A DNA stretch of 64,000 bases from Paragordius varius (taxonomy: Eukaryota; Animalia; Nematomorpha), in NCBI GenBank assembly GCA_964247055.1, contig OZ176053.1:10292001-10356000 (forward strand). The letters run 5' to 3'. The notes under the pieces were generated by a model that saw nothing but the letters and a program-made list of their open reading frames with translations, made no database searches and was not told the DNA's origin. Positions within the stretch are counted from its first letter, which is position 1; every line of letters starts with the position of its first letter. This document shows positions 49,507 through 55,339 of the stretch, one piece after another. The translations under genes and the position numbers were made by a program.

Positions 49507-55339
<5,833 letters not shown>

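Follow-up and report, generated by a model that had tools for sequence, protein, structure and literature searches.

Two introns of 21 and 22 nt near the start of a hairworm PTPN11 gene, probably ancestral introns that have shrunk

How can a conserved signalling gene function when the coding sequence of its first SH2 domain is interrupted by 21 nt that carry an in-frame stop codon? This is the question raised by the PTPN11/corkscrew locus of the hairworm Paragordius varius, which lies in a 64,000-nt stretch of contig OZ176053.1 (hereafter the window). The explanation that we favor, with a probability of about 0.9, is that this segment and a second one immediately upstream are old PTPN11 introns that have become shorter, and that both are most likely removed by the U2-type spliceosome; the splicing itself is what we infer from the arrangement of the gene.

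The local spliced model of the gene consists of 15 exons and encodes 645 aa with a single terminal stop (Table 1). Database searches were run exon by exon, and the joined model was used for the local frame check alone. Two SH2 domains are followed by a classical PTP domain (Pfam SH2 and Y_phosphatase; tblastn with the Gordionus protein), and the catalytic HCSAGIGR and WPD motifs of the latter are intact. All 14 introns of the model are GT-AG, and in order they measure 22, 21, 454, 395, 1148, 148, 214, 115, 198, 414, 147, 257, 123, and 275 nt. A preliminary description of this DNA had proposed that 21 nt are removed beside kb-size introns in the same gene. Long introns are indeed present, with a median of 236 nt for the 12 of them, but just one (1148 nt) exceeds 1 kb. 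That description did not include intron 1. Retention of intron 1 gives a frameshift and a stop. The frame 5' of exon 2 contains no ATG, and no further in-frame ATG is found near 49471; the ATG at this position, the 14 coding bases, and the 22-nt intron together yield five residues ahead of FFHPN, as is the case in Gordionus and in tortoise PTPN6. Intron 5 begins with a GT-AG stretch of 24 nt, which was also considered as a tiny intron and was rejected since no exon follows it. Farther downstream in the model, a 15-nt microexon (53023-53037, plus strand; GKTNK) and an 83-nt exon (53236-53318) together make up an insertion within the PTP domain, at the two sites of which Gordionus has no introns.

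Table 1. Positions in the window of the tiny introns and exons discussed in the text.
Feature	Position	Strand	Description
PTPN11 exon 1, coding part	49471..49484	+	14 nt, ATG at 49471; length as in Gordionus and tortoise PTPN6
PTPN11 intron 1	49485..49506	+	22 nt, GT-AG, phase 2
PTPN11 exon 2	49507..49629	+	123 nt, first half of N-SH2; Pfam SH2 1.3e-11
PTPN11 intron 2	49630..49650	+	21 nt, GT-AG, phase 2, in-frame TAA
PTPN11 exon 3	49651..49860	+	210 nt, second half of N-SH2; SHP2 match 4e-10
PTPN11 exons 4-15	49861..55339	+	C-SH2 and PTP domains, ending with the stop codon at 55339; interrupted by 12 introns of 115-1148 nt
QDPR intron 1	22472..22496	-	25 nt; preceding exon ends at residue 35, following exon begins at residue 36 (DHPR chain 1hdr)
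QDPR intron 2	22261..22284	-	24 nt, in-frame stops if kept; exons end at 98 and resume at 100, split codon between

Intron 2 splits an Arg codon (AG/G) after the residues FTLSV, so that the junction reads LSV-R. When the 21 nt are retained, the frame reads R-F-stop, reaching the TAA that had already been pointed out in the unspliced sequence; when they are removed, the frame is open through the N-SH2 domain and collinear with SHP2. To compare this junction with others, every GT or GC donor in 49508-49659 was paired with AG acceptors as far as 49759. For the acceptor at 49650, the frame is preserved only with the donors at 49630 and 49552, of which the latter was rejected because its use would cost 26 residues, among them the phosphotyrosine-binding Arg of the SH2 domain. 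No other pair in the scan leaves the N-SH2 domain whole, and the remaining open combinations lose large parts of it. Searched separately, exon 2 aligns with SHP2 chain 5x7b over residues 6-45, whereas residue 4 of exon 3 aligns with residue 50 of that chain. This leaves one split codon and three residues between them, and the join obtained by splicing is therefore gapless. From base composition, the chance of GT and AG falling at two fixed ends is ~0.002 per intron. The ends, the codon split, and the domain collinearity agree with the 21-nt GT-AG intron proposed earlier, and judging from the sequence it is very probable that intron 2 is a real intron of an intact PTPN11 gene.

The position of this intron had been matched to the exon 2/3 junction of vertebrate PTPN11. 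Comparison with orthologues substantiates the match, with the same codon and phase found in Gordionus, in a PTPN11-like gene of a grebe, and in tortoise PTPN6. In Gordionus sp. m RMFG-2023 (PTPN11/corkscrew, XP_065316761.1), introns 1 and 2 are both in phase 2 and measure 44 and 40 nt, while later introns, mapped like those of the following species from the animal's own DNA, range from 85 to 8321 nt. The tortoise gene has introns of 7653 and 336 nt at the two sites, and the grebe gene has one of 8358 nt at the second, after LSV-R. Together, the introns of other animals at these sites span 40 to 8,358 nt. Capsaspora, mapped in the same way, has neither of the introns of the N-SH2 region; a phase-2 intron is present there at the equivalent SV-R position of the C-SH2 domain (L002 953-1095). 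The Hyalella gene was mapped for its first exon only and stands outside the comparison of intron positions.

The first exons are also alike in their dimensions. Coding lengths of 14 nt for exon 1 and 123 nt for exon 2 are common to Gordionus and tortoise PTPN6, and exon 3 measures 210 nt in both hairworms, with 62% identity and shared inserts of 2 and 3 residues. When exon 3 was searched against 1.84 billion proteins, two matches were obtained at 1e-18, both from Gordionus sp. m RMFG-2023, with the next at 1e-7; a word search with the same exon returned no matches. Gordionus ranks first for nine of ten PTPN11 exons, with a summed score of 1289 vs. 995 for the next. These exon scores, which stand in place of a tree and involve one hairworm relative, suggest that the host belongs to Nematomorpha and is closest to hairworm sequences, as a horsehair worm of a genus other than that of Gordionus. 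A myxozoan, dicyemid, or orthonectid host was considered and rejected in view of the Gordionus match. As in Paragordius, the two shortest introns of the Gordionus gene are its first two, but at 44 and 40 nt they are twice as long and lie inside the known animal range. By chance, the two smallest introns would be the first two in 1 of 91 and 1 of 66 cases for the two hairworms, figures that are not independent of one another. Since the same sites hold longer introns in the relatives, including the outgroups that give the change its direction, introns 1 and 2 appear to be old introns that shrank.

How would such short introns be removed? The two are alike in their signals, each starting with GTTTTA, ending in ATTTTAG, consisting of ~90% AT, and having an A at -7. 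The GTTTTA donor is a poor match to U1. Intron 2 combines GT...AG ends, a conserved frame that is restored on removal, and a position and phase in common with introns of orthologues, as expected for the U2 type. The RTATCCTT donor and TCCTTAAC branch site of the U12 type are absent, the donor being GTTTTA and no C-containing branch motif being present. A search with Rfam found no snRNA within the window. We propose that introns 1 and 2 are ancestral introns of a working PTPN11/corkscrew gene which were shortened by deletion, and that the ordinary U2-type spliceosome would most likely remove them through intron definition. U1 and U6 would read the bare GU donor, U2AF would recognize the short UUUUAG end, which lacks a pyrimidine tract of its own, and U2 would use a branch A within the AU-rich core. 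In nematodes, U2AF reads a compact UUUCAG acceptor and a long pyrimidine tract is unnecessary, and an acceptor of this kind may have been a starting point common to hairworms. The best candidate for the branch, a guess from two sequences, would be the A at -7 of both introns, giving a lariat loop of 15-16 nt and a 6-nt tail; the run of A's from -10 to -14 would be an alternative. This geometry seems feasible because Stentor branches at position 10 of its 15-nt introns (PMC9505925). With 44 and 40 nt in Gordionus, short first introns would already have been present in the shared hairworm ancestor, and the size floor would then have been halved in the lineage of Paragordius.

A reading that is compatible with the one above, although we regard it as rather unlikely, is that the tiny introns are real but poorly spliced. 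Transcripts that retain them would be lost to nonsense-mediated decay or would start downstream, and the introns would act as a throttle on output. The weak donors are in line with this, as are the very short introns of microsporidia, whose median splicing efficiency of ~25% is cited by Hadjez et al. (PMC13644364). Moreover, the Gordionus RefSeq isoform X2 (XP_065316762.1) starts at a Met within exon 3 and is without the first 48 residues, which would possibly fit a 5' intron that is retained or differently spliced. However, two consecutive obligatory introns in a conserved signalling gene would be expected to be spliced with reasonable efficiency.

It is highly improbable that the gene is a pseudogene, or that its N-SH2 domain is dead, with introns that fall below the limit of splicing and are retained. 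In its favor, 21-22 nt is under the ~30-nt limit which, according to the introduction of PMC13644364, was long assumed for animals, and no transcript was seen among the runs searched: none of the words of the locus were found in five runs guessed to be RNA and bearing the same species label, and the four runs that cover the locus span introns as well as exons and thus behave as DNA. Against it, all 14 introns keep GT-AG, exons 2 and 3 are strongly conserved with Gordionus, and QDPR would need to have suffered the same kind of death. Among the best-supported exonic differences listed, 13 of 23 are synonymous, where 21% would be expected (p 0.0002; with 30% expected, p 0.007), as are all four of those listed in exons 2-3. 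The differences at 50478 and 50479 have equal depth and together change Ser to Glu, and none of the variant haplotypes listed introduces a stop. This partial sample of variants points to purifying selection on PTPN11. With the frame and motifs intact and the variation mostly synonymous, the pseudogene that had been named earlier as a possible refutation is unlikely.

Even less credible is a bypass without the spliceosome, whether through read-through of the stop, which would insert a loop of 7 residues, or through hairpin-guided cleavage and ligation like that of XBP1/HAC1. It is true that 21 is divisible by 3 and that the site lies in an SH2 loop. However, TAA serves as the terminator of PTPN11 and HMMR here, the lengths of the first introns of PTPN11 and QDPR, 22 and 25 nt, are not divisible by 3, and the GT-AG ends are found at ancestral spliceosomal positions. 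Folding of the tiny introns gave no hairpin beyond that of shuffled sequences (z 0.10 and 1.06), and the paired stem-loops of the IRE1 type were accordingly not seen at the cut sites; an apparent hairpin between exon 2 and the intron was rejected for being no better than shuffles.

A longer intron collapsed by the assembler, for which the AT-rich, low-complexity sequence could speak, can be practically dismissed, as the raw-run contigs X3 record 10 (49485-49685; 0 differences, 0 gaps, both tiny introns spanned) and X5 record 16 (49589-49847; from a second sample that has alleles of its own, 6 substitutions, 0 gaps) cross intron 2 and the second sample thus carries the 21-nt segment uninterrupted, contrary to what the preliminary description had allowed for. 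Genomic lengths of 21 and 22 nt, both below 30 nt, are found in independent contigs; X3 itself is of low depth and partly identical, and is possibly not independent. Record 9 of X3 has 3 extra bases somewhere within 49440-49685, at a site that is not among the differences listed. No assembly joint or loose end is listed at the locus.

Other genes in the window have introns of similar size. The exons of QDPR abut exactly on the numbering of human and rat DHPR, and its 25- and 24-nt introns are followed by a third of ~1.08 kb. At 21030-21110 (minus strand), a second copy of the acceptor of this third intron and of the initial bases of exon 4 occurs ~55 nt upstream, forming a decoy 3' splice site. 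In SETD2, a 24-nt candidate comes first and the later introns measure 68-1016 nt; the candidate (29706-29729, plus strand) is GT-AG, lies right after an ATG at the start of the gene, ends in an in-frame TAG, and is not obligatory, the next ATG being at 29742. The first intron of BRSK is 923 nt long, and none in this gene is shorter than 94 nt. Among the 31 introns modelled in the window, whose median is about 150 nt, five are below 30 nt and a size gap extends from 25 to 68 nt. The four tiny introns supported by homology are all located no farther than 300 nt from the start codon, and in no case is one preceded by a long intron. GTT donors are present in three of these four vs. 3 of 26 long introns (Fisher p 0.018, with small numbers and post hoc); Gordionus does not have this donor split between short and long introns.

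Two size classes would be maintained in this lineage, the tiny introns lying no more than a few hundred bases from where a gene begins and those of normal length (68 to >1,100 nt) farther downstream. The placement at the 5' end is suggested by few genes, and BRSK, with its 923-nt first intron, counts against it. It could be caused by cap- or promoter-linked splicing, or by protection of 5' introns from insertion together with a deletion bias. A tentative and somewhat doubtful extension is that introns of 21-25 nt are removable only near the 5' end of the transcript, with a floor of 68 nt downstream. It is equally speculative that a single spliceosome would then have two size floors, helped for example by the cap-binding complex or by promoter-proximal polymerase.

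At 14430-14900, a SIDT1-like gene (minus strand) and a whirlin-like PDZ gene (plus strand) stand head to head with starts ~150 nt apart. Candidate tiny introns are found near each start, at 14652-14671 (20 nt, which would be the shortest intron of the window), 14607-14630 (24 nt), and 14876-14900 (25 nt). HMMR/RHAMM (45404-46849, plus strand) is one intronless ORF of 481 codons in the vicinity of genes that keep ancestral introns, and is possibly retroposed or intron-stripped; a search with HMMR as bait gave matches in vertebrates only. Broken retroelement remnants resembling reverse transcriptase occur at 47400-49200, between HMMR and the start of PTPN11, and at 10700-12300 in a SIDT1 intron. 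The 33-nt end of a high-copy repeat is located in PTPN11 intron 5 (51474-51506; depth ~40,000 in run X2). The whirlin-like gene contains a copy resembling it (16310-16345), and dispersed repeats related to it occur at 26400-27500 and 42000-44700.

Among animals, introns of <30 nt are reported from only two lineages, the myxobolids and Dicyema, in a survey of 51 animal genomes, which describes genome-wide intron shrinkage for both and medians of 22-27 nt for myxobolids (Hadjez et al., 2026; PMC13644364). The preliminary description had listed ciliates, nucleomorphs, and dicyemids as the main owners of such introns, a list from which, by this account, the myxobolid myxozoans were missing. As described there, the introns of Henneguya salminicola, Thelohanellus kitauei, Myxobolus rasmusseni, and Dicyema japonicum resemble those of Paragordius in being GT-AG, 20-27 nt long, and at ancestral positions, with reduced donor signals and weak A's before the AG, in parasitic lineages whose genomes also contain longer introns. 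They differ in that their genome-wide median is <30 nt, whereas tiny introns make up 5 of the 31 modelled in the hairworm window. The hairworm examples are also confined to gene starts, lie in a repeat-containing, non-compact region, belong to an ecdysozoan, and are known here from DNA, unlike those of the two lineages, which have RNA support. The tiny PTPN11 introns thus resemble the introns of myxobolids and Dicyema, and would be set apart from them by their lineage and by forming only a minority of introns, located at gene starts. Stentor coeruleus (15-16 nt; PMC9505925) and Paramecium (~25 nt; PMC5014332) likewise have AU-rich GU-AG introns whose length leaves no room for a separate pyrimidine tract and which are handled by a conventional spliceosome able to branch ≤10 nt from the donor. 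Ciliates, however, are unicellular, and their introns are virtually all tiny, a long class being absent from the same gene. No report of tiny introns in hairworms was found in the literature searched, which excluded subscription papers such as that on the Acutogordius/Nectonema genome; the main text of PMC13644364 does not mention Nematomorpha, and the word 'intron' is absent from two hairworm genome preprints.

From the evidence at this locus, hairworms look like a third animal lineage with introns of <30 nt, here at gene starts. If this is true, it would be the third independent case among animals and the first in an ecdysozoan. In this genome, genes will be cut short at the 5' end by annotation pipelines whose lower limit on intron length exceeds 21 nt. 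The PTPN11 locus offers a clean case, as introns of 21 nt and 1.1 kb occur within one gene and direct comparison is possible with a relative that has 40-44 nt at the same sites. Paragordius and Gordionus would therefore provide a natural comparison of the states before and after shortening, with which to ask which features of the spliceosome determine the lower limit of intron size.
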